A DNA stretch of 64,000 nt, taken from assembly GCA_964199315.1 (NCBI GenBank), contig OZ116700.1, positions 10,354,001 through 10,418,000 of the forward strand, written 5' to 3'. Position 1 is the first letter of the stretch. Every line of letters starts with the position of its first letter. Below, one piece after another: positions 154 to 18,600 of this stretch. Under the pieces are notes generated by a model. The model was not told the origin of the DNA. It worked only from the letters and a program-made list of their open reading frames with translations, and did no database searches. A program made the position numbers and the translations under genes. Source of the DNA: Orbicella franksi. Its lineage: Eukaryota.

Positions 154-658
154 CTACAGGAAACAAAAGCAAAGAATATATAAAGTTACCATGCATTCAC
201 TTAAGTAACCTCATATCTAGTGCGCGCTGTAGCAATCAGTAGAAGACGTTTGATTTGTTCACAAAAAGAAGGCTTATAGCGGGGAACTTGATTCGCAGTA
301 TCTGTAGCAACTTGATTCACTTCCTTCACCATTAATGTTGGTCTGAAAGGCGACAAGCTTCGCTTTCTCTCTGCACTGTTTGTAGTTAGGAGTTAGTGAT
401 GGAACCAAGCCACTTCAGTTGGCTTGTTCCATTCACGAGTGCAGTGTATCGTTGTAATAGAGATTTAAAAAGCAGAGTTGTAACTCGAGCAGCCAACGTG
501 CTAGTATTATACCAATATGCTGGGGCCAACCATCTTAAGTTACCAATGTTCTTGTCTGGGAAAATCCTACTCTGATGCAATATTTACAAATGATTCGCTA
601 TTTACTGATAGCCATGAATAGCTCACTTGGGAAAAAAAAAAAAAAAAAAAAAAAAAAC

Positions 659-693
<35 letters not shown>

Positions 694-3600
694 CATAAAC
701 AAAGGAGAAAAAATAAAACACAAACAATGCAGAATCGGTAGACACAACTTTTAGTCTCACCTGCTCCGCCTGCAAAGCTTCCTGAAATTCAGGAAACAGA
801 TTCTCGTATTCAGAAGGATCCGCCAAAGAGTCGGCAGCCTTTTTGTTGACTTTACCTAAGTCTTCTTTCCACAATTTGACAATCCTAGCAAAAGAAAAAC
901 ACGCAAGCATTGAAAAGCATTGCAGTTAATAGAATCATTTAAAATGCAATGCAAATACGACATAAATTCAAATATGCACCACTGAGCAACAAACATCTGG
1001 AAGAACTTGAAAAACGGTTCACACTCCACGACTTAAAATGGGTTATCAAAGCTGAATTAGGTTGTTAAAATAGTTGTAGCAACTTGATTCACTTCCTTCA
1101 CCATTAACACAGGTTTGAAAGGCGAGAAGCTCCACTTTCTCTCTGCACTGTTTGTAGTTAGGAGTTAGTGATGGAACCAAGCCACTTCAGTTGACATGTA
1201 CCATTCACCAGTGCAGCATTATTGGGTGAGGGGTGAGGTGGGGGTGCGCTGAACTACGGGTCAACAGGTCCGGGGTAGAGCCCTGGCAGGGTTATTGTGT
1301 TGTTTTCTTGCATAAGAGCATATTGCCTCTCTCCACTCAGGTGTAAAATTGATGGGTACTGGGGAATTTAGTGCTGAGAGGTGTAACCCTGCGATGGACA
1401 GCCATCTCATTCAGTGGGGAGTAGAAATACTTCTAGTCGCTTAATACGCAAACCGGAAATAACCTCAAGTGGCTCAAGTGGTATGGACACGTTTATGTTC
1501 CACCATTTTGTTTTAAAAGAACATTTTCCAAAAAAAAGGGGGGGGGGTTTCTTCTTTCTTTCTGAATTATGAACCTGGCTACTGTTGTTATCAAAGGGCT
1601 TAATTACGTCTAACTTACTTTGACACATGGCTTGGTAAGTAGGTGCGAGCCATGAAGGCTGCTTCAGGGTACCGACCCGTGCTACACAGCAACTCTATGC
1701 CTTCTTCTAACCTAATTTTAAATTAAACATCATCGTTAACAAACAAATGTTGGGGACAAATGGTTAGGTTGACAATGAAGGTGGGAAAATGCGATCCCAC
1801 AAAGGTTCACCCCTAAAAACGTGACCAGCTGTGGTCGAACTTCTAATTTCTTTGAACAAACCTATCTTACGAAACGCACAACACCGTCATGAGTACATGC
1901 ATTTGTAGAAAGAACTGATACCTGCAGGAATAGCTTCCTTGATTAACAGAATGTATAGCACGAACAGGAACTATAATTTTATTTGAAGAAAATCTAAGAT
2001 ACAAAAAAAGTCTGAAAATTACAAAGAAGCCATTTTCACTAGCCTTTGTCACTTCCTGTCTGTTACTAGTTTTCTTGTTCAAAATCGAACTATAAAATCG
2101 AACCGTTACTGTTGGACTTCCCTTTAGAGCTTTCTTAAAAAAAAACATCTACCGGCTTTCGCTCTTTTTAAACCCTAAATCGTAAATAAAAAGTATTCTG
2201 TAGGCAATGCGTACAGCGTCTGCTGTATATCGTAAGTGGATACCCCTAACATTTTATAACCCCTTGGTACTAGGTTACAAGTTGTACTACATATCTACCT
2301 TCCGAGAAGGAAATAAGCCAAAAAGGCCACATTGTTCTTGCCCTTCTTAGCAGACGTCTCTGCGAGTCGTAGAATCATGTCAGCATCTCCTGCAGATGTG
2401 GCTAGAAGTAGCAAGCCTCCGAAATCCTGTGCATTAATCAGACACTCTTGAGCCAGCTGAAACTGACAATTGGAGATTGCCAGCTCTGCCAGCTGCTTCC
2501 ACTTGTGTTCACTCTGAAACAAGAAAAGATATATTTAAGTTAAAGAGAGTGGAAACAAGAAATCAGTTGTAACTGGGGGGAGGGGGGGGGGGGGAGGGGA
2601 GAGAGTGGGAAGGGCATTCTTTTATAGTTACCTCTGACTTGGACGCAATCTCGTAGGCGATCTTCAGCTCTGACAACTGTATTGCCAGGTCAAACCTACC
2701 GAGAGAAGAACAGAAAACTTGTTAGCTGAAAACTGCTTTTAAGTGTTGCTGTTCCTTACACCCGCATTCTGAAGTTCAAAGCCTAACTAATGATTGGGTT
2801 TTGAGCTGCTGTCAATCATACATACTGTAACTGTACGACCGCAGCATATGAACCTTAAAAATGAAGAAAACAAATCTGGATCTGTGAAGTGCATAGTTTG
2901 ATGTTGTCTTGGTCTACATGTATTTGATCCAGTTTGATTCAGTGATTCAGCATACCTTTACCGTACATCATGTCTCCAACACGGCTTTTTGGTTTTCTTT
3001 AAGGTAGAAACTCAGTTTTTGTTGTATCCGAATATGCAACTGTTTTCCACTTAAACTTAAAGCGGGAATTAGGGTACCGGAGTTGCACACTCTCGAAATG
3101 TAGGATGTATATATTTTTTGTAATGTCATGATGCTAATGATGAAGATTTATGTACTTCCTGGGCACAATGTACATGTAGCTACCTGTGCTCTGGATCACA
3201 AGACACTGCCAGCGCTTGTTGCTTGAAGCCTTGCTTCTCTAAGAAGTGAGCTACGCGATTCCTTTGGTCTCGAGGAATGGTCGGCAGCACCTGCATGAAA
3301 TAACAGTGACACATGTAAGTACTGCACTAAAGGTTTCATTTCTAATACCTGGTCAATCACAGGAATTTAAACCACAGACTTAAATGTAACAACACCAGCT
3401 TGAAAGCATAATAAACTGTACTACTTACAGTCTTCTACATATGGGTCATTGACCAACCGTGAGATCACGATGGCTGGATATTGGCCAAGTCCTTACTCTG
3501 TGTGTTTATAACTGGACAGAGTCAAGGTCTAAAAACTAAATGAGGCCAAAAAGAATGAGGCCAATATCCCGCCATCTTGACAGAACAAGTTTGATTAATA

Positions 3601-6600
3601 AAGGATTTATTATATGGACTTCAGGGAGATTCTTCTTGCAGGAAACAGCAGCTAGTCCCAAGCAGGCAAGATAGCTCCATCTTGTCCGCTCAGGTAGCCA
3701 ATCATCGCGCAGGATTTGGTTCATCTTGCCCACTCACAAAGCTACAGCGTAGCCATATAATAAATGAAAGTATTGCTCAATAGCTTTCATAATTTTGAAT
3801 GGTCACGCACTACAGTAGGGTGTCATTCACGGAGTGACCTGAAAGTGACAGCTTGTACAAGATACAGCAAAACTAAAGAACGTGAAAGTTCATGTACTGC
3901 CCAGCAACTTTCATATCAAATTTTAAGACTAGACATACATGTACAAAGACACATTTATAGTACATGCACCTGCTTAGCTGTCTCAAAGTCTTGTCTCATC
4001 ACAGCTGTCTGGTACTCCAGGACCGACAGCAGCAGGGAGTAACCAACAACATTCATATCCTTGTCACTCAAGTAAAGCCTGTTGTCTTTGGGGATGTAGC
4101 CAAGAATGTACATTGTCCTAAACAAACCAGGAACAGACCAAGTCAATAAACACAGCAGTGAATAGTCTGTCAACTTTCAACTTTATTGGTCACAAAATTA
4201 CAATATAATTGCAACCCATACACATGTGTATGCAGTTTTGTTTGAACACCTTTCTAGTTGTAGTTGGGTCCAATGGAATGTTAAGTGATTTATATCACCT
4301 AGTGTACAAAATAACTGTAGCAGCTTGATTCACTTCCTTCACCATTAATGTAGGTTTGAAAGGCGACAAGCTTCACTTACTCTCTGCACCAATTGTATTT
4401 AGGAGTTAGTGATGGAATCAAGCCAGTTCAATTGACATATTCCAATTACGAGTGCAACCCTTTCATTATGAAAATAGGTTCAACTAATTATAAATAGTAT
4501 AGCCGACCTATTCATCTACTGAAGATATGGTTCACAACAAATACATGTACATGTATCTAGAAATTGCAACTGCCATTGTACATACATGTAACACAAACTA
4601 CAGTGCAAATAATGTGAGTGAGTGAGAACTGTATTAAAGTGTCCAAAACCTTATAGCCCGGAAATAATACACTATAATATGGGAAAATGCATGCACAGAT
4701 GACAAATTTTATAAATGCACCACAAACCTGTCTAGGTGAGCAATGGTAACAATTTCACCTCCAACGTAATAGTTGAGACGGTTCACAGCATTAGTGTAGA
4801 TAAAACAGTCTCCAACCCAAATGCCAGTCTTGACACAGTCTTCTATTTCCCCACAAACCTAATATGCACAAGGAGAAACATTCTTCATTGACATCACAAC
4901 TATAACCCACATACATTGCTGTACTAATGCAAAACAGACTATTCACTATTATGATCCCACTTACACTGTATAACTCAATTTTTCTTGTTGTAAAAAAATC
5001 AAGCCACTGACAGAATATTTTACCATTTGATTATGTGTACCACATTTAACTCTTATTATTAAACACTTGATCATTGGATAAGACATTTCAATAGTTTTCA
5101 TTGGTTTAGTCATGATGGTATTTGAGCAGTTACACCATTCTCCACAAATATGGTGAGCATACGTGTAAATTTTTGGTGCGTTTTTATTTTATTTTACTCT
5201 AGTTTCCTATATTTTGGGGGCGTTTTTAATAAAAACAATTATTCCAATAGCACTTGTTGGTTATGAGATGAATATAGCCACCTTGGTGCTACGGGCCTTG
5301 TTGTCTATCTACTGTCTCATATCCAATGCACGCTCATGGAATAATAATTATTGTGAGATAATCAAATTGAATAACTAACATGTACAGTACAATGTATATT
5401 ATTGAACNNNNNNNNNNNNNNNNNNNNNNNNNNNNNNNNNNNNNNNNNNNNNNNNNNNNNNNNNNNNNNNNNNNNNNNNNNNNNNNNNNNNNNNNNNNNN
5501 NNNNNNNNNNNNNNNNNNNNNNNNNNNNNNNNNNNNNNNNNNNNNNNNNNNNNNNNNNNNNNNNNNNNNNNNNNNNNNNNNNNNNNNNNNNNNNNNNNNN
5601 NNNNNNNNNNNNNNNNATTTCACCAGTGAGCCTGGGGCTCATTTTAATGTGAACGTGTATCCTAAAATTAAAATGTAAAATTTAAATATGTTACAGTATC
5701 TATTCAATAAAAATACAAAAACTAGACTATAAAATTTAAAATTGAAAAACTAAACTATAAAATTTAACTAGACTACAAAAATTTAAATATGTAAACTAAT
5801 AGATACAAAGATTACAGCCACAATTGGCCTCTGTAGTCAGATTAACATTGTTCAGTAAGTTTTTAAAAATTCTAAGAGAGGACACTCCTCTTATATTGTC
5901 AGGTAGGTTGTTCCATAAACATGAAGTTATGTAGCGATAAGATTTATGCAAATACTTTGATTTAAAGGTAGGCTGATTAAGCTTACAATAGCCTCTTACG
6001 TCATAACTGCTAGAACGCAATGAGAACAATTCCTTGATGTAGTTTGGCCCCGTGATAAATAAAGATTTTTAAAGAAGGATTAGGGCTTGCATGTATCTGC
6101 AATGCTCCAGGGACTTGATGTTTACTATCTAAATGACCTACATGTACCTATACTGTATAGTAGGGGTTTCATTAACATTTTCAGCAGAAGTGCAACTGGG
6201 GTTAGTAGGGGTTTCATTAACATTTTCAGCAGAAGTGCAACTGGGGTTCTCAGGCAGGCAAAACTTTTTGAACTGAACTTCATTTTAAGAAAAACTTTCC
6301 TCTACCTGTAAATGGTTAAACCAGGTGGGCAAAATCATTCTCACAGTCAGTCAACTTGCCCGGTGCCAGCCCTTAATGAAACCCCTGCCTATAGCCAATA
6401 ATTATTTGCAGCCTTGCTTTATGTGTACCACACTATTGTGCCACTTAAAGAACTGAATAACTAGCATGCACCATTTACATTGTAGATGCACAAAAATTAC
6501 GGTAATCTTACATCAAAAGCATCCTCGATGCCATCTTCAGTCATGACCTCTGGTGTTTCCTGTGCTTTAGCAACATTTTCAGCACTATACTTGAGAATAA

Positions 6601-9600: not shown

Positions 9601-12600
9601 ACTGAGATAAAAGTATATAATTTTAAAGGCAACACAGTTGACAAACCTTGATAAGAATACTTCCTTCATCATATCCAAGGGCAACATTGTTTGACCCCTT
9701 GAACATGGCCATACTCCAAACCCTCTCAAGACCATAATTCAGGGTGCTCTCCAGTCGGTAAGTGTTTGCTTGCCAAATGCGTACAGTGCCTAAAGGGTGC
9801 AATAAACAGTAGAATCAGGTAATTACATGTAACAATTTAAGCATCAATTACCAGACAGAATATAATAATTATCTGATAGTTACATGTACATTCTTCTGAA
9901 CAAATACATGCACTGCTCAAATGAATCATTGCATTGAAACATAATTTGCTTTGACTGTTTTTGATTGTTCAATATTTTGGAAAAGCAAAAAAAGAGGGAA
10001 AAAACAGCTTTGATCAGTTTTAACTATCCAAGGCATCTTTTTCTTTTGTTTTTGTCTCCAAAAACGATGAGACATAATATCAAAAAGTAAAAATGTTCTC
10101 TGGTTGAAAGATTAAAAACACAAGCTTTCAGCTTTGGAACATAGCAAGCAATCCTGAGCATGCGAAAGAGCCCTACATGTATCTTGCCCTCCCAGGTAGC
10201 CAGTCACAGTAAACGATTTGGTTCATCTTGCCTGCTTGTGAAGCTACATGTACATGTACATGTACATGTACATGTACCAATGAAATAGTTACTCTCTAAA
10301 CGTGTATGCTGAAGTTGTACAGGTCCATGTATTTTGAAAAACTTATATGCAGTTTTATAAAACAAACACAAAACCAAAGCACAGACAATATACTACAGTA
10401 CATGAGCACATGTTCATGTTACACATATTATTTCCACTAGTCAGTGAAAACAACTCCACATTATCTTGCAGCCAAATTTAGCGATCATCGTCGAGTATAT
10501 TATTGATTCTTTGTGGCAACATGGTCTTGAAAGAACATGTATAGGTATTATACTTTTACTGCCACCACTGTAAAATAATCTGTGTCAAAATACCAGGAGC
10601 TTTTTTACATACCATCCTCTGAACCAGTCAAAATTATGGGCAATTCTGGGTGAAATCCAACACAAGAGATGTTCTGGGCATGACCTTCAAGTGTTTGCAC
10701 ACAAGTTTTGTTCTGGAACATAACCAACAACCAATTCAGAAAAGAAACTTAGAAAGCAAAATTTAACAACTACTACATGGACACCGTACATGTACAAAAA
10801 AAAAAAAACTAATTAAACATAAAAACAAACCTGATAGTCCCATATCTTTACCAGTCTATCATCAGCACCAGATATTAGATATGGCTTCTCACCACCATGG
10901 AAATAATCCACACAATTTACACCCTGCAATACAATGATAACAAGACACACTTTGAGTAACCATAATAAATATTATTATATAAACATGTATATACATGCAA
11001 GGTCATTTAGCAATGTTCACTTGACACAATATTACAGATATTTTACAAAATACATGTACATACATTGGAAATTATAATATTAAAATTAATAAAAAGTTTA
11101 CTTAATGTCCCATTAATTAAGCACATAGACCTGTATACTGTATATACCTTTTCATGTCCTTCTAGAGTGAAGTTAGGAGTGTTGGATCCAAGCTGCCACA
11201 CCTGAAAAGGAAATGTAAATTAATTTTCAAGATGGTACATGTAAAACAGTCAAATTTTCATATACGACTGTAATGGTGTTGTAGCTCAGGGGGGCTGGCC
11301 AAGCATTATCTCAAATTAACTTCTCATATGTGGGCCCCAAGCGGGGTCTAAACATTTAAACTTTTACTGAACAAATTAATGGAAATTAATTCCTTGCGCA
11401 GGTTCAAAACATGCACAAGATGCCAAAAGTCAGTCACCTCCTGGCAACCAGCCTTGAAATTCTGGTCATCATTTCAAACCCTGCCTAGTACCTTGCACAT
11501 AATACATGTATGTATACCCAGTATGGTTGAAATTGTGGCTCAGTACAGATGACACAATGTAATACACAGAAGGTACATGTAGAGCAGGACCATTACACTA
11601 CAAAGTTTATCTACAACACAGCGCATTAAGGAGAAACATTTTTGTGAGCAGACCTACACGAACAGATGTACAAGTCATGTATACAATGCCTTTTGTTTTC
11701 TTCCTTACTGTAAAAGGATCTTAGTCAATTGAACACAGTGTTGTTATAATGAGTAGAATAGAGAGTAACTAAGTAAACACTTTATTTAGTGAGGATAACA
11801 CTGGCTAAAAACTAATAAACTTCCTCAAATAATCAAAATTATCAGACATCTACATGTAGCTTAGCAGAATAGTGTGCCTCTGATGGTGATTTTGCTGGCA
11901 GCTGGCTTTTTTAGACAACCATGTGTACATTACAAATTGTGAATGTACATTGTAATTCTGACTAGCTCAGTGCTATACACAGGTTACACTTTACCTTGAT
12001 TGTTCTGTCTAAGGAAGCACTAGCAAACTGGTTGTTATCCTTTGGATTGATGACAATTTGCATCACATAATGGGTGTGGCCCTCAAACACTTGAGTGCAC
12101 TGCCATTTTTTATCCCAGTCCCATAGTTTGATCAACATATCATCTGCAGAAAGACCAATTACAAAAATAAGATTACAACAGCTGTAATGCAATTTTAATT
12201 GAAGCTACAAGTACACTTAATATTTCTCTTGGCACAATACAAATATTACATTTAAGTTGATTAACAACTGCATCGCAAAATGGAGGCTGGGTGCCTGTGA
12301 TATCCAGGAGCTTCCACTATTGGCAGCCAGCTCCTAGATGGAGACTGCTCCCATGGCTGGCAAATCCTGGCAAGCCAGCCATGAGCCCCCACGCAGAAGG
12401 GAGAGCAGGCACCCGTCACACTGTGTGAACAGTGGAAAAGAGGGAGGGAAATGGGGGGGAGGGAGGAAGCCTTGAAGATGAGGTCCCATGAACTGCCACG
12501 CAAATAACACGCTAGCGCCTGTAACGCTAAACACACTTCAGTCAAAGAGCACATGGGATCTGGCGCATGCCCATGTATGAAACGCCGCTGACTCCAGACA

Positions 12601-15600
12601 ACACTGGCGCTCTTTGTTGTTAACTCCGTTAAATTGCATTTAACTGCATTTAACAACTGCATCGCAAAATGGAGGCTGGGTGCCTGTGATATCCAGGAGC
12701 TTCCACTATTGGCAGCCAGCTCCTAGATGGAGACTGCTCCCATGGCTGGCAAATCCTGGCAAGCCAGCCATGAGCCCCCACGCCAAGCCGGAGGACCTCC
12801 GAGCAGCGCGCTAGCCAGCTCGGAGAAGAGAGGGGCTCATGGATGGGGAGGCCAGAGCCCCGAGAAAAATGCCCAAATCCGTAGGCACCCAGTAACTGGC
12901 AAATTAGTGACAAAAACCATACCTGTTAGGCAAGTCGTTCAGCTACTGAAAGGATGGTTTCCACAGGTGTGCGCACATATAACAAGTAAGCATCACTCGA
13001 CCAGCGACCCATTGTCTTAATGAGATGATCAGGAACACCTCTCTGGGCAGCAGTTGTAGCGGCTCCAATTCTAAAACTATGACCCGAGAACTTTCCAGGA
13101 ATACCTGCTGCCTGTAGAGTGGTTTGAAGAAACGAGGAAAGCCGAGATCTAGAAAGAGGAGAGCCATCTTGGTGAATAAAGAGAGGTCCGGTGCCTGGCC
13201 CACGAAGATGAAGGTAGTTTGTTAATGCAGTCACAGGACAGAGAGGAAGGGAACCACGGCCAAGATAGATGAAACAACCCTGCCTGAAAGGATCAGTCTT
13301 TGCACACTTGATTAACACTCGAAAGCTTTGGGGATTGGTGGAGGAATCTACTTGAAGATCTGCCGCGGTCAAATGAACAGATGGATCAAAGGTACCATTT
13401 GTTGTAAATTCACCAGCTCTAAGAAACCCAAAGAAGCCAAGACAGCAGGCTGCCCATAGCATGACACTGTCAGGGTTGATAAAATCTAAAGACTTGTGCA
13501 AAACAGACATAAGGTCGGCTGTCACTGGTTGGCGCTGAGGGAGATTTGGGCCCTGATGACGTTTGATCCCTCGTAAGAGACGCTGAAGTTGAAGACGGTT
13601 GACAATTGGGTCTGGGAAGCCATAGTCAATGTGTAAAGAACGGACTGCAGACAAATATACTTTAATGGAAGAATGATGAAGACGATCTGCTAAATGGGTA
13701 CAGAAGCGCATCAGAGTTTGTTCACTGGCTGGTAAAAGAGGCTGACTTGGCTCGAAGGGAGTATCCTGACTACAAAAATCTAAGAACTGACGTTGAGCCG
13801 AAGCATAAACTTGGCGAGTAGAAGGTGCGAGGCCATTGGTCAAATAGAACTGGCATTTATCTGTCAAATTACGGGCAGCTGAGCCAGCAGCGTTAACGGA
13901 ATTGGAGTCGCCCCAGGAGCTGCATGAGGAGCAAGATGATGGAAACGCTGAAAATCAAAACGAGATAAGGCATCAGCAATCGAGTTGTCTTTACCCGGCG
14001 TATGAGAGGCAGTAAAGGCAAAGGAATGTCGGGCTGCCACAAGTGACAAGTGGCGGAGAAGAACCATCATGTTCGGATCCTTCGTGGTGCCCGAACGCAA
14101 AACACTAACGACTGCCATGTTGTCGGAGCAGAACTCAACTCGTTTAGAAGCCCATCGGTGGCCCCATAGGGAAGCTGCAATAACCACCGGAAACAACTCT
14201 TTGTAGGCAATTGCCAAGGGATGCTGAACAGCTGACCATTCACCCACAAACCATTCATGATCACAAATTGCACCATAACCCCGAGCACCAGCAGCATCTG
14301 AGGAAACGTAAAATTCAGGCAAGGTCGCCCACTGTGGGGAAAGCAGGAAACTGAGACCACCCCAAGAATGGAAAAATTCTCGCCACCAACGGAGGTCTAA
14401 GCGAAAGTCTTGGTTGATCCTAATTGGGTGGCTATCACGTCGAAATGCTGACAGTAAATTGATCATGCGTCTCAAGAAGGTACGCCCCTGAGGAACTACT
14501 TTACATGCGTGTTGGAGATTGCCAATGAGAGATTCCAGCTCCTTCCGTGTGCAATGTTGTTTGAGGGACCAGGCTTCCAGAAGTGCAGCAATACGACCAA
14601 ACTTATCCAGCGGCAGACGGGCCTGAAGTGAGAGAGAATCGAGCTCAATACCGAGCACAGTTAAACAAGTGGATGGCCCCTCCAATTTGTTCGGGTGAAG
14701 AGGAATACCCCACTTTTTAAATAGCTTAACACAAGTATCAATATTGTTCTGGCAAACAGGTGAGTTAGGAGGGCCCAATGTATGGAAGTCATCCAGGTAG
14801 TGTAAAAGAAAATTCACATTATAATTGTGTTTGAGGATCCACTCGAGCATATCTGCAATGGACGAGAAGATGAAAGGAGCAGAGCGTAGTCCAAATGGAA
14901 GCGCCATATCAATAAAATATTTCCCACGCCACTTCATACCAAGTAGGTAACGATCATCAGAATGGACAGGGACATTACGGTAAGCACTTTCCACATCGAA
15001 CTTTGCCAACAGCGTTCCTCTGCCGTGAAGCATGATCCCATCGATGATATCATCAACCTTCATGTACTGCACTGAAAAGGGTTCTTTTGGAATGCCATCA
15101 TTGACACTATGGCCTAAAGGACTAGACAGATCCAAGATAAGCCGCCATTTTCCAGGCTGGTACTTCTTCGGGATAATTCCAAAGCGACTCACATGGAGGT
15201 TTGGGATAGGGGCTATAGCAAAGGGGCCAGCTACACGGCCTTTGTCGAGTTCCGTGAGGAGATACTGGTCGATGACTGAAGGCTGAAGGGATGCTGAAGG
15301 CATATTTTTATTCTCCGATTTTAAAGATACCGCCCGAGGGTCAAAACCCAGCTGAAAACCATTTGTGAGACCTGAAATCACATACTCCACTTGCGTTTGG
15401 TCGGGGTAAGAACACAGTTCATGCCGAAGTTCCTCCGCGTCTATGGGGGTTACTCTGGATGGGGGGACCAGGTCTTGCTGCGGGGTGCCCAAAATGGACA
15501 AAGAACAAGAGGGCAAAGCATGGTGTGCCACTTCGGAGGGCATGTCATTACCAAAAGCATCTTGTGGTGCAGGAACAACCACATTAACAGGAACAGGAAT

Positions 15601-18600
15601 AAAAAAAAATTTGAAAAGGAAACTGAACAAGATGAATGTACGCTATTTACATATGGTTTGGATCCCACTTCAACGCCGCAGATGTTTGCTTTGGGATGGG
15701 GGAGTTGACTGGGAGCGCCGGTAAGAAGAGGTTGAGGCCCGAAATGGACAGTTGACACGTGGATGATCACCTTCACATTTCTCACAGCGATGGAGGTACC
15801 GGCATTGACCAAAGGTCCAGCGACAGGTGCCATCATTCCAAGATCGGCAAAAGGTGGATGAACCGGCTATTGAAATTGAAGCCGAAGACGAAGTGGTTGG
15901 CTGCTGGCTTGACTGGGGAAGAGGTGATGAAAGAGTATGGAAGTTGTACAAATCATGGTTCATGTGAGACCAGTCCACCAAACCTGCAGCAGCTGCGTCC
16001 TTGCGGAATGCAACATCGTAATGGAGCCAAGCCTTCCCAGGGAACTGGCGCGACGTCTTGAGAATTAGCAGCTTGTATTGTGTCATGTCCTGCCATCTGG
16101 AAGAATGAACACAGCAGAAGATCCATGAGTACACAGTGAATGCTTCAACCCATGTCACGATATCAGTGATCTCTTGCACCCTTTTCTTGGAAGAACTCAC
16201 GAGAAGTTTGCCATCAAGGTACGTTTGGGGCTCTGTCTCCTGGGCTTTCAAGTTCTCTGCTAGCAAGTCAGCAAGATCCACAAATTGGCCAGACCTAATT
16301 TTTGTCACCAGCTTCTCCAGGAAAGGGGAATAACCGGGGCCAACAACAAACGGCCTATTCAGGGATGTTGAGGTAGAGGCGATGGAGGAATTAGAACCAA
16401 AGGAGACCAATGGCATGAAAGACTGGTTGGAAGATGGCAATCCATTCGCAGCACCACGAGAACCAAACAACGATGGCGAAGATAAAGAAGAATTGCCTAA
16501 CGTGCAGTATGTTGAAATAAAGGGAGGAACGACCAAATTACCTGAGGACTGGCCTGCAGAAGAAGGCAGTGGTTGGTTAATGACAACAGAACCGGATGAC
16601 GTCATGCCCGACGCCGCGTTTCCCGCTGTCGAAGAACTCGATGAGTGACTTTGCAAAGCCGCCAAAATGCGAGGTAACGTATCCCCCAAGGCTTGTGAAA
16701 ACGCTTGACTGAGGTCCTGTTGAGAGAGGACGAAGGAGGGCGGAGTGGACACCGGAGTCGAAGAAATGGGAGGACGTACGACCGAAGAGGGAGAATCGGC
16801 TGAAGAAGAAGGCTGACTTGAATCCAACATGGCGGCCACACTGTTGTTTGTTGCACGACGATGTGCCATACCAAACGAAAGAAACAACGGCAAGATTCGA
16901 AAAACGACGAACGAAGAACAAATAATGCACACGCTACTCAGGGAGGAAGCCTTGAAGATGAGGTCCCATGAACTGCCATGCAAATAACATGCTAGCGCCT
17001 GTAACGCTAAACACACTTCAGTCAAAGAGCACATGGGATCTGGCGCATGCCCATGTATGAAACGCCGCTGACTCCAGACAACACTGGCGCTCTTTGTTGT
17101 TAACTCCGTTAAATTGCATTTAACTGCATCAAAATCTCAACAGTTTACTGCATCATTCAATGACAATCTGAAGTTCAAAACCTAACAAATGACTATGTTT
17201 TCCGTTATGGTCAATCGTGATTATAACAACAAGCTATTAACCCCGAAAAAAAACAAACAAACAAAAATGGATCGAAATCTACCAATCACAACCCACACAA
17301 GACCTTTTGAATCTACTAAAGTAAACTTTTGTTTCCTGAGAGGTCTGCTAATATGATTGATGGCAGGGAAACACAAAAGCATTGATTGAGCAGACTTTGT
17401 ATGTAATAAATTGAAAGATGCAGCGAAAAGGTAGAAAACACACATTTGTTGTAGTGACAAGGCAAAAAGAAGTGCAGAACACAAATTCAATTTGATCATT
17501 CTCAGTCCATCAGACCATTAAAAATTCATTGCTTTTGTTTTACTCACCACTGCTGGTAAGAACATAGGGCTGCGTTGGATGAACAGCAATTGAACGTAAG
17601 TAATCTGAATGAGCTTCAAATCCATATGCCTGTTAAAGAAACAACAAAATTGTCAAAGTTTACATGGACTAAACAGGTTGAACAAAAAATGTACCATGCC
17701 CTGAAGAAATTTCTGAAATCCTTAAATACTCTGATCCCATTTTCTCTGATAGAAACTCTGTGACACAGAGATGAACAGGAAAGGTGGCATGGCAACACAT
17801 CAAATTGAATGCAACAAAAAAAATTTACTTAAAATTTTGCCAGTCATTTGTCTCACTTCACTGAAAGGCATACAGACATATGCACATTGATAACTACAAT
17901 GTATATACACATACATAATTATATACCCTGAGATATAACATACACAGCCCCTGGCTTTTCTGCAAGTTTTTCAGTAAATGCTGCTTTTTGAAAAATGCTC
18001 TATCACCACGCACAAAAGAAATGTCTTTACCTTCTCTAGAGTGTTGTAGTTGAAGACTCTTAGCATCATGTCATCCTAAAAAGCAATTCACACAATCATG
18101 CTCAGAGTACTACATAGGCTGGGTTACGTAATGTATGTTTCACTCAAGGTTCACAGCATTTTTGGACCAAATTCAAGAACTTGTTAGGACCTACATGTAC
18201 ATGTACACTTCAATAAATCTAATTTTTCAAAGACATACAAAATGCAAGTAAGAATTTTACTGTACATGCAAACAAAGAAATGCAGAGCTACATAAGTTAG
18301 TTTACTTTTCCAACTGCCAAGCACCAAATTCAACCAATACTGAGTGGAAGTACAGTACATGTACTTGAATATTAGTGCATGATATTAAGTATACAATTAA
18401 AACAGAATCATACATAAACTTACAGATCCTGTCACCACCCAGTTCTTTCTTGGTACAAATTTGGCTGTACGCACTACAATAAATAATGCATACAATAAGA
18501 AACTGAATCAGTTGAATGTTTCAATATTGGTTATATTATTGTACTTTTAATCAAAGTTATATGCATTTACCTCCTAAATCAAATGCAAAGCTATGTACAT

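Follow-up and report, generated by a model that had tools for sequence, protein, structure and literature searches.

The closest described relative of the elements reported here is SNORA68 (U68; Rfam RF00263), an intronic vertebrate small nucleolar RNA (snoRNA) of the box H/ACA class, built of two hairpins with an H box and an ACA box, whose human form is hosted in RPL18A and targets U4393 of 28S rRNA (PMC3511933). Here, we describe three ~146-nt units, termed copies A, B, and C, in a 64,000-nt stretch of the coral Orbicella franksi (assembly GCA_964199315.1, contig OZ116700.1, positions 10,354,001 to 10,418,000; hereafter, the window). They lie in three separate introns of one gene, COPB2 rather than RPL18A, and are, with high probability, paralogous SNORA68/U68-type H/ACA guides targeting U3096 of the coral large subunit (LSU; 28S) rRNA. 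A first-pass annotation of this DNA, made by a model from the letters alone, had proposed U68-type paralogs in sense orientation to COPB2; the human host and target that it named agree with the published table just cited, and its assignment is borne out by the boxes, SNORA68 matches, and spliced reads described below.

Neither the different host nor the paralogy is out of the ordinary, because a comparable duplication and the instability of host associations have both been published. In the sponge Suberites, an H/ACA snoRNA of RPL13A was duplicated into a neighboring intron, with copies that are ~94% alike (PMC3412847), while the "constrained drift" model describes how snoRNA host associations drift across eukaryotes (PMC3511168); this is a general model, and Cnidaria and SNORA68 are outside its coverage. 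The coral locus resembles the former as an early-branching animal in which an H/ACA snoRNA appears to have been copied between introns of one host, and the latter in that the same guide function occupies non-orthologous, broadly expressed hosts in different lineages. It differs from the sponge case in snoRNA family and host, and in having three copies, two of them five introns apart. A literature search on snoRNAs associated with COPB2, or on H/ACA snoRNAs of corals or Nematostella, returned nothing specific.

A further set of precedents concerns contacts with rRNA that do not modify it. In snR30/U17 (PMC2664660), snR10 (PMC2879522), and snR37 (PMC13015370), a pocket-like internal loop or an added domain contacts the pre-rRNA, by pairing or by tethering, in the service of folding or processing, and snR10 and snR37 make such a contact beside a working pseudouridylation pocket. 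As discussed below, the coral units may belong in this company as well.

Three SNORA68-like units in the O. franksi genome

Alignment and BLAST confirmed that one unit recurs at the three annotated positions on the minus strand of the window (Table 1), the copies being 85 to 90% identical pairwise. Querying the whole 497-Mb assembly with copy A returned A, B, and C only (100, 92, and 88% identity; E values of 2e-69, 6e-51, and 5e-44), and a genome-wide search with RF00263 likewise matched nothing else. Because these searches return only three copies, all of them intronic and in sense orientation, the unit is not a dispersed repeat, the high-copy alternative that the annotation had wished to see checked. 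A genome-wide search with a covariance model of our own, made from the copies together with their orthologs, added one weak 27-bit match (C13:23657748-23657886; L022:1501-1639). We judged this would-be fourth locus to be a chance hit, as it is without an ACA, has GGAGAA at the place of the H box, and lies antisense within the remnant of a long interspersed nuclear element (LINE) reverse transcriptase. Sequence likeness is confined to the unit itself, and the flanks of A, B, and C do not align. A copied segment that consists of the ~146-nt unit alone fits the intron-to-intron duplication that had been proposed.

The family assignment comes from a permissive Rfam scan of the 64 kb against 4227 families, in which the sole matches with an E value of ≤1 were those of SNORA68 to the three copies (E values of 6e-4 to 0.08 per 64-kb window); no family reached its gathering cut-off anywhere in the window. 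The alignment to the SNORA68 consensus is close in the 3′ hairpin (GUCGCCUUU ... AAGUGAAU ... CUACA), where the pocket GUCGCCUU...AGUGAAU matches the consensus, and in the basal stem of the 5′ hairpin, (U/C)GCAC...GUGC(A/G). Otherwise, the coral 5′ hairpin is longer than that of SNORA68 and differently built.

All three units show the order that defines the box H/ACA class, that is, hairpin, ANANNA, hairpin, and an ACA followed by 3 nt to the predicted end. The H box, AGAGAA in copies A and B and AGAGUA in copy C, falls between the two predicted hairpins. The 3′ hairpin also has the geometry of a pseudouridylation pocket, whose top lies 14 to 16 nt from the box and whose strands pair around a U-N dinucleotide: its strands are GUCGC on the left and UGAAU on the right, and the base that immediately follows the upper stem is 14 nt ahead of the ACA. 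This description, given by the first-pass annotation for all copies, holds for A and C, whereas the left strand of copy B reads CUCGC, a G-to-C change in the guide. Its claim of a two-hairpin fold stands insofar as both hairpins are predicted; the 5′ hairpin, however, does not form a canonical pocket (see below). The apical loops (CUGAAG, UUGAAC or AUGAAC, and AACAUUAAU) contain no UGAG, the Cajal body (CAB) box of small Cajal body-specific RNAs. As judged from their sequence, we regard the units as guides of the SNORA68 type in function, which formally miss the Rfam cut-off and differ from the family in host and 5′ domain.

We also noticed that the 10-nt sequence AACTTGATTC (RNA strand, GAAUCAAGUU) occurs twice at the end of copy A, at window positions 286-295 and 309-318. 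One occurrence is inside the lower stem of the unit and the other is 13 nt past its 3′ end, which may reflect a local duplication.

The 3′ pocket matches the helix 89 loop of 28S rRNA

For target prediction, every uridine of the LSU (3631 nt), small subunit (SSU), and 5.8S rRNAs of one complete ribosomal DNA (rDNA) unit from the assembly was scored for bipartite pairing to the 3′ pocket, with a threshold of 8 bp. U3096 of the LSU emerged as the best target for all three copies. Copies A and C pair there over 11 bp (5+6, including two G.U pairs), their next best site reaching 9 bp with four G.U pairs, while copy B pairs over 9 bp at what is the sole site to reach the threshold. The scan thus recovered the pairing with GUUCA-U-A-GCGAC that had been read off the pocket in the first-pass annotation. 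This is the target motif of SNORA68 (U4393 in the older human numbering), and the letters of the coral pocket are those of the family consensus. The 16-nt target sequence, GCGUUCAUAGCGACGU, occurs ~1574 times in the assembly, in rDNA arrays and within LSU rRNA.

In the LSU structure annotated by Rfam, helix 89, the long helix after the peptidyl-transferase ring strand, ends in an apical loop of 7 nt (GUUCAUA), and U3096 is the last base but one of this loop. The uridine had been placed next to the peptidyl-transferase center, which is right in that helix 89 belongs to domain V and lies beside the ring, but the target sits in the apical loop of that helix and outside the ring itself. Given the guide match, U3096 should be a pseudouridine. 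SNORA68-type guides would thereby extend to corals, as would, we infer, the pseudouridine of the helix 89 loop. We also considered yeast snR37, which guides U2944, as a counterpart of SNORA68, and rejected it: U2944 corresponds to human U4521, which is assigned to SNORA10 (PMC13015370).

Two kinds of rDNA were seen in the assembly. Unplaced contigs carry complete units of ~8.5 kb with SSU, 5.8S, and LSU, and an array on a chromosome-scale contig (C10:27184800-27192400; L017) has a period of 7272 bp and contains LSU rRNA and a 200-N run, with no SSU match in the 4.6 kb upstream.

COPB2 hosts one unit in each of three introns

The host gene was identified by its protein product. A 75-aa exon translation matches COPB2 proteins, and a representative ortholog (P0034) aligns end to end with the mouse coatomer beta′ subunit (5a1u_D) at 1646 bits. 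Mapping P0034 by tblastn places the COPB2 exons on the minus strand, running from ~19,000 down to 761. Splice joints were taken from X23, raw poly(A) RNA-seq reads from a coral filed under the same species name, and from X10 and X1, two RNA runs kept as contigs; another run, X21, barely maps to the window. The joints show CT..AC on the plus strand, that is, GT..AG on the minus strand, which puts A, B, and C in sense orientation in separate COPB2 introns (Table 1). For the copy C intron, the cut is shifted by a shared CT, which yields CT..AC ends as well. The 3′ ends of the units lie 146 nt (A), ~188 nt (B), and 195 nt (C) upstream of the 3′ splice sites. By our exon count, the hosting introns are numbers 23, 22, and 17, respectively; the numbers given earlier, 24, 23, and 18, have the same spacing and are off by one, an offset that could reflect an untranslated first exon.

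Table 1. Coordinates of the three units and of the COPB2 introns and exon around them (window positions)
Feature	Position	Strand	Elements	Evidence
Copy A, H/ACA snoRNA	300..445	-	H box 365-370; GUCGC 350-354; UGAAU 315-319; ACA 303-305; invariant block 386-404	RF00263, 30.8 bits; BLAST; fold
Copy B, H/ACA snoRNA	1072..1217	-	H box 1137-1142; CUCGC 1122-1126; UGAAU 1087-1091; ACA 1075-1077; invariant block 1158-1176	RF00263, 37.8 bits; BLAST; target scan
Copy C, H/ACA snoRNA	4313..4457	-	H box AGAGUA 4378-4383; GUCGC 4363-4367; UGAAU 4328-4332; ACA 4316-4318; invariant block 4399-4417	RF00263, 39.7 bits; BLAST; X1 contig
COPB2 intron with copy A	154..760	-	joint 153/761, CT..AC	67 read pairs in X23; contigs in X10 and X1
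COPB2 intron with copy B	~884..1617 (boundaries ±1)	-	joint 883/1618	57 read pairs in X23; contigs
COPB2 intron with copy C	4118..4727	-		loose ends at 4119 in X23, X10, and X1 resume at 4730 onwards
COPB2 exon between copies A and B	761..883	-	~aa 767-809 of P0034	spliced reads

The first-pass annotation had spoken of a lineage-specific host switch. This assumes a direction that is not supported, as it would take outgroups to tell which host is ancestral. At the RPL18A locus of the coral (contig C11, located via exons matching Pfam PF01775), no SNORA68-like match with an E value of ≤1 was found over the 10 kb around two Pfam-matched exons. The same region contains sub-threshold matches to plant-type microRNA precursors on both strands (L013:3125-3492), which most likely reflect a long inverted repeat or a hairpin resembling a miniature inverted-repeat transposable element.

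Copies at two of the loci are retained in a second coral

The orthologous introns of another coral, which had been proposed as a check, could be inspected in part. An exact-pattern scan of metagenome contigs yielded three (L014, L015, and L016) from a more distant coral, with exons 97 to 98% and introns 76 to 86% identical to the window. Of these, L015 and L016 correspond in position to the intron of copy C and are orthologous to it. In L014, the sequence passes from the upstream intron of the B locus, via the snoRNA (L014:2271-2418), into a flank that belongs downstream of the C locus (98.4% identical to L016). To judge by this arrangement, L014 was most likely assembled as a chimera across the repeat; if so, two copies would share a long identical stretch in that coral. 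The 5′ half of its unit is of B/A type, being identical to copy B at 69/74 positions and to L015 at 60/74. Because both loci are occupied in the second coral, the B- and C-locus copies predate the split of the two corals and have been kept since. The locus provides a clear and dated case both of a guide duplicated from intron to intron and of an old guide function housed in a different gene, and both fit the published models.

Across the six sequences now at hand (A, B, C, and the units of L014, L015, and L016), no change other than the G-to-C of B occurs in either guide strand, in the ACA box, or at the base of the upper stem, and all six keep the ANANNA pattern of the H box, the fifth base being A or U. 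The 5′ hairpin at the B locus is 93% identical between the corals, compared to 76% for the alignment spanning the upstream introns and exons.

A possible discrete RNA of the copy C type

RNAs of the H/ACA class are stable, discrete species bound by dyskerin, Nop10, Nhp2, and Gar1. The clearest trace of a discrete product comes from copy C in run X1, a set of coral metatranscriptome contigs. The bin over copy C has a depth of 232, compared to 0 and 61 in the adjoining intron bins and 86 to 315 in exon bins. The underlying contig covers positions 4314-4444 at a depth of ~273 and carries Illumina adapter sequence at both ends, indicating a short insert. Between the adapter and position 4314, it contains 17 nt equal to the 5′ end of the RNA (GCACUCGUGAGUGGAAU, a variant of copy C type), such that the contig is circularly permuted, with the 3′ end, 2 nt past the ACA, joined to the 5′ end (GCAC...). 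The corresponding species would measure ~142 nt (4314-4455). It could be a circular or concatenated snoRNA or, alternatively, a ligation artifact of the library.

In the scenario that best accounts for these observations, the units would be transcribed within the COPB2 pre-mRNA, each in an intron of its own, and after splicing of the three introns exonucleolytic trimming would free the protein-protected core of two hairpins, a route we adopt from the general H/ACA pathway. The 3′ hairpin would be the working guide, with GUCGC(C) and UGAAU pairing with GCGAC(G) and GUUCA of 28S rRNA and leaving U3096 and the A that follows unpaired at the base of the upper stem, 14 nt from the ACA; there, dyskerin would isomerize U3096 to pseudouridine. 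The 5′ hairpin probably serves the architecture of the ribonucleoprotein (RNP), and its invariant 3′-side strand may tether the RNP to the segments flanking helix 89. Copies B and C would have arisen before the lineage of the second coral split off and been retained, the guide of copy B being weakened now.

Several observations weigh against this scenario. Although SNORA68 is the only family to match the three copies, as the proposed model search had been meant to find out, all scores (30.8 to 39.7 bits) are under the curated 43-bit cut-off, and formal Rfam membership is not reached. At the C locus, the whole unit is 88 to 89% identical between the corals versus 82 to 86% for the intron, which is only a slight excess. 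Covariation over the six sequences is not significant, and no measure exceeds shuffles: 94.9% of base-pair cells are paired, and only one pair, in the upper stem of the 5′ hairpin, has changed on both sides (U-A to C-G). The CAAGUU/CAAGCU variation that had been called stem-restoring does not qualify as such, being a one-sided change from G.U to G-C. With respect to expression, support for the units consists of contigs only, and contigs prove neither transcription nor ends nor strand; the depth of copy A in X10 is at intron level, with no enrichment over the flanking intron, and no discrete product of copy B was found in the RNA runs. The X23 poly(A) reads show zero depth on A, B, and C, which is expected for non-adenylated snoRNAs and provides no support.

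Alternative readings of the units

The alternative that survives best holds that only one or two copies work, the others being redundant duplicates in decay. We consider it unlikely, if well within what the data would tolerate. Copy B is one candidate: the G-to-C change in its guide not only lowers the pairing from 11 to 9 bp but also disrupts the uppermost pair of the lower stem, and shuffled sequences fold as well as it does (z = -0.26, compared to -3.1 for copy A, the best fold of the three). Moreover, the discrete adapter-flanked contig is of copy C type only, and copy A, as just described, does not rise above its intron in X10. On the other hand, the H box, the ACA box, the right-hand guide strand, and an invariant block in the 5′ hairpin are kept in all three copies, and the second coral has retained a B-locus copy in which the B-type signature adjoins an intact GUCGC. 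Nine base pairs may, in addition, suffice for guiding.

A very improbable alternative would make the 5′ hairpin itself a second pseudouridylation guide, for another uridine in rRNA or small nuclear RNA (snRNA). Two-hairpin H/ACA RNAs often have two pockets, and the 3′ strand of the internal loop in this hairpin is invariant. However, the stem into which it is predicted to fold is long and irregular, with a bulge of 18 nt on its 3′ side, and the facing 5′ strand, which would have to form the other half of the pocket, varies among the copies. Between the top of the loop and the H box there are 29 nt, where a pocket would have 14 to 16, and scanning three definitions of the pocket against rRNA, snRNAs being outside the scan, returned no target common to the copies. 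The 5′ hairpin, then, is not a canonical guide and is without a usable bipartite pocket.

Least probable of all is that the resemblance to SNORA68 arose by chance, in units that guide nothing and represent either an intronic repeat of low copy number or snoRNA pseudogenes inserted by retroposition. Sub-cut-off Rfam scores and nonsignificant covariation would agree with this, but there are only three copies, all sense and in one host gene, their boxes and both guide strands stand in the right geometry, their best rRNA target is the known SNORA68 site, their positional orthologs are conserved, and they are the only Rfam matches at an E value of ≤1 in the 64 kb. The marks of snoRNA retrogenes (snoRTs), which are a poly(A) tail, target-site duplications, and dispersed insertion in either orientation, are likewise missing: no A-run follows the ACA and no repeats flank the unit, on which ground a retroposition origin was rejected.

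An invariant block in the 5′ hairpin is complementary to segments that bracket the target site

If the 5′ hairpin does not guide, why would part of it be invariant? In the six sequences, 19 consecutive columns, UUCCAUCACUAACUCCUAA, show no change, whereas 38% of the remaining columns of the 5′ hairpin vary. The 3′ end of this block is 15 nt from the H box. The block consists of two abutting 9-mers, each of which is perfectly complementary to the LSU: UCCAUCACU to positions 3161-3169, at the junction after the helix that follows helix 89, and AACUCCUAA to positions 3024-3032, in a variable hairpin tip before the peptidyl-transferase ring strand. The 5′ half of the block would thus pair downstream of U3096 and the 3′ half upstream, which is the order required of a splint made of one strand. 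The two LSU segments are separated by 128 nt, with U3096 at the midpoint (63 and 64 nt on either side), and both are present in ~1550 rDNA copies.

Single 9-mer matches to rRNA are common, about three per copy being expected by chance, and what sets the block apart is the pair. Among 300,000 shuffles of the block, none gave abutting 9-mers that bracket the target; 300,000 random 19-mers from the window gave 12 such pairs, which may stem from resampling of the three snoRNA blocks themselves, as their number is about that expected from it. Analytically, the chance of an abutting, bracketing pair in the whole 147-nt RNA is ~1e-4. The segment at 3024-3032 is a sequence-variable hairpin tip, with ucaaAaUUU in the Rfam LSU consensus and UUAGGAGUU in the coral, and the segment at 3161-3169 has a coral-specific A (position 3165) in place of a consensus U, and this A can pair with the block. 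In scans of duplex energy against the LSU, the SSU, and the entire rDNA unit, shuffled loops did as well as the 5′ loop, and RNAcofold of copy A with 28S positions 3011-3185 did not choose the splint. The signal is one of two exact 9-mers that abut and of where they are placed; it is not one of energy.

We tentatively propose, as an idea that is plausible but rather less than probable, that the block serves as an accessory rRNA-binding tether or folding splint, which would make this a dual-mode snoRNA with a catalytic 3′ pocket. Pairing of the block would close a 128-nt loop of the pre-rRNA with U3096 at its exact middle, hold the region of helix 89 open, and present the loop of this helix to the 3′ pocket, whose pairing is short (5+6 bp); a degenerate 5′ pocket would, in other words, have been re-used as a bipartite tether made of one strand. 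The precedents introduced above match in kind but not in form. In snR30, the two motifs are on opposite strands of a loop, whereas the coral block is one continuous strand, with predicted pairing only, that would reach two rRNA segments 128 nt apart; in snR37, extra helices and proteins are involved and a different uridine is guided. If the proposal is right, it would show that a pocket spent as a guide can still serve a modifying H/ACA snoRNP as a tether or a splint for folding, a question that is now opening in yeast with snR37 and snR10. Compared to the host and the duplication, this bipartite 18-nt complementarity bracketing a modification site is the feature that could matter more.

A possible parallel exists in vertebrates. 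In the SNORA68 family consensus, the 5′ hairpin contains CUAAACCCA, a sequence complementary to UGGGUUUAG in the A-loop of the 28S consensus, which lies downstream of the target by ~110 nt. This may correspond to the coral tether; with a probability of ~0.05 of arising by chance, we treat the match as a lead only.

Other features of the COPB2 introns

Additional features were observed in the COPB2 introns of the window. At 623-697, in the intron with copy A, a (CA)n microsatellite adjoins a poly(A) run that precedes it, and reads are cut there. An N run at ~5400-5625 within another stretch of intron is either an assembly gap or masked sequence. The intronic region at ~3543-3850 reaches a summed contig depth of up to 695 in the RNA runs, with many odd joints, and looks like a high-copy repeat that is expressed elsewhere. 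Finally, a retroelement lies in sense orientation within a COPB2 intron at 12261-17129, its minus-strand open reading frames of 313, 588, and 454 aa being reverse transcriptase and tyrosine-recombinase-like.

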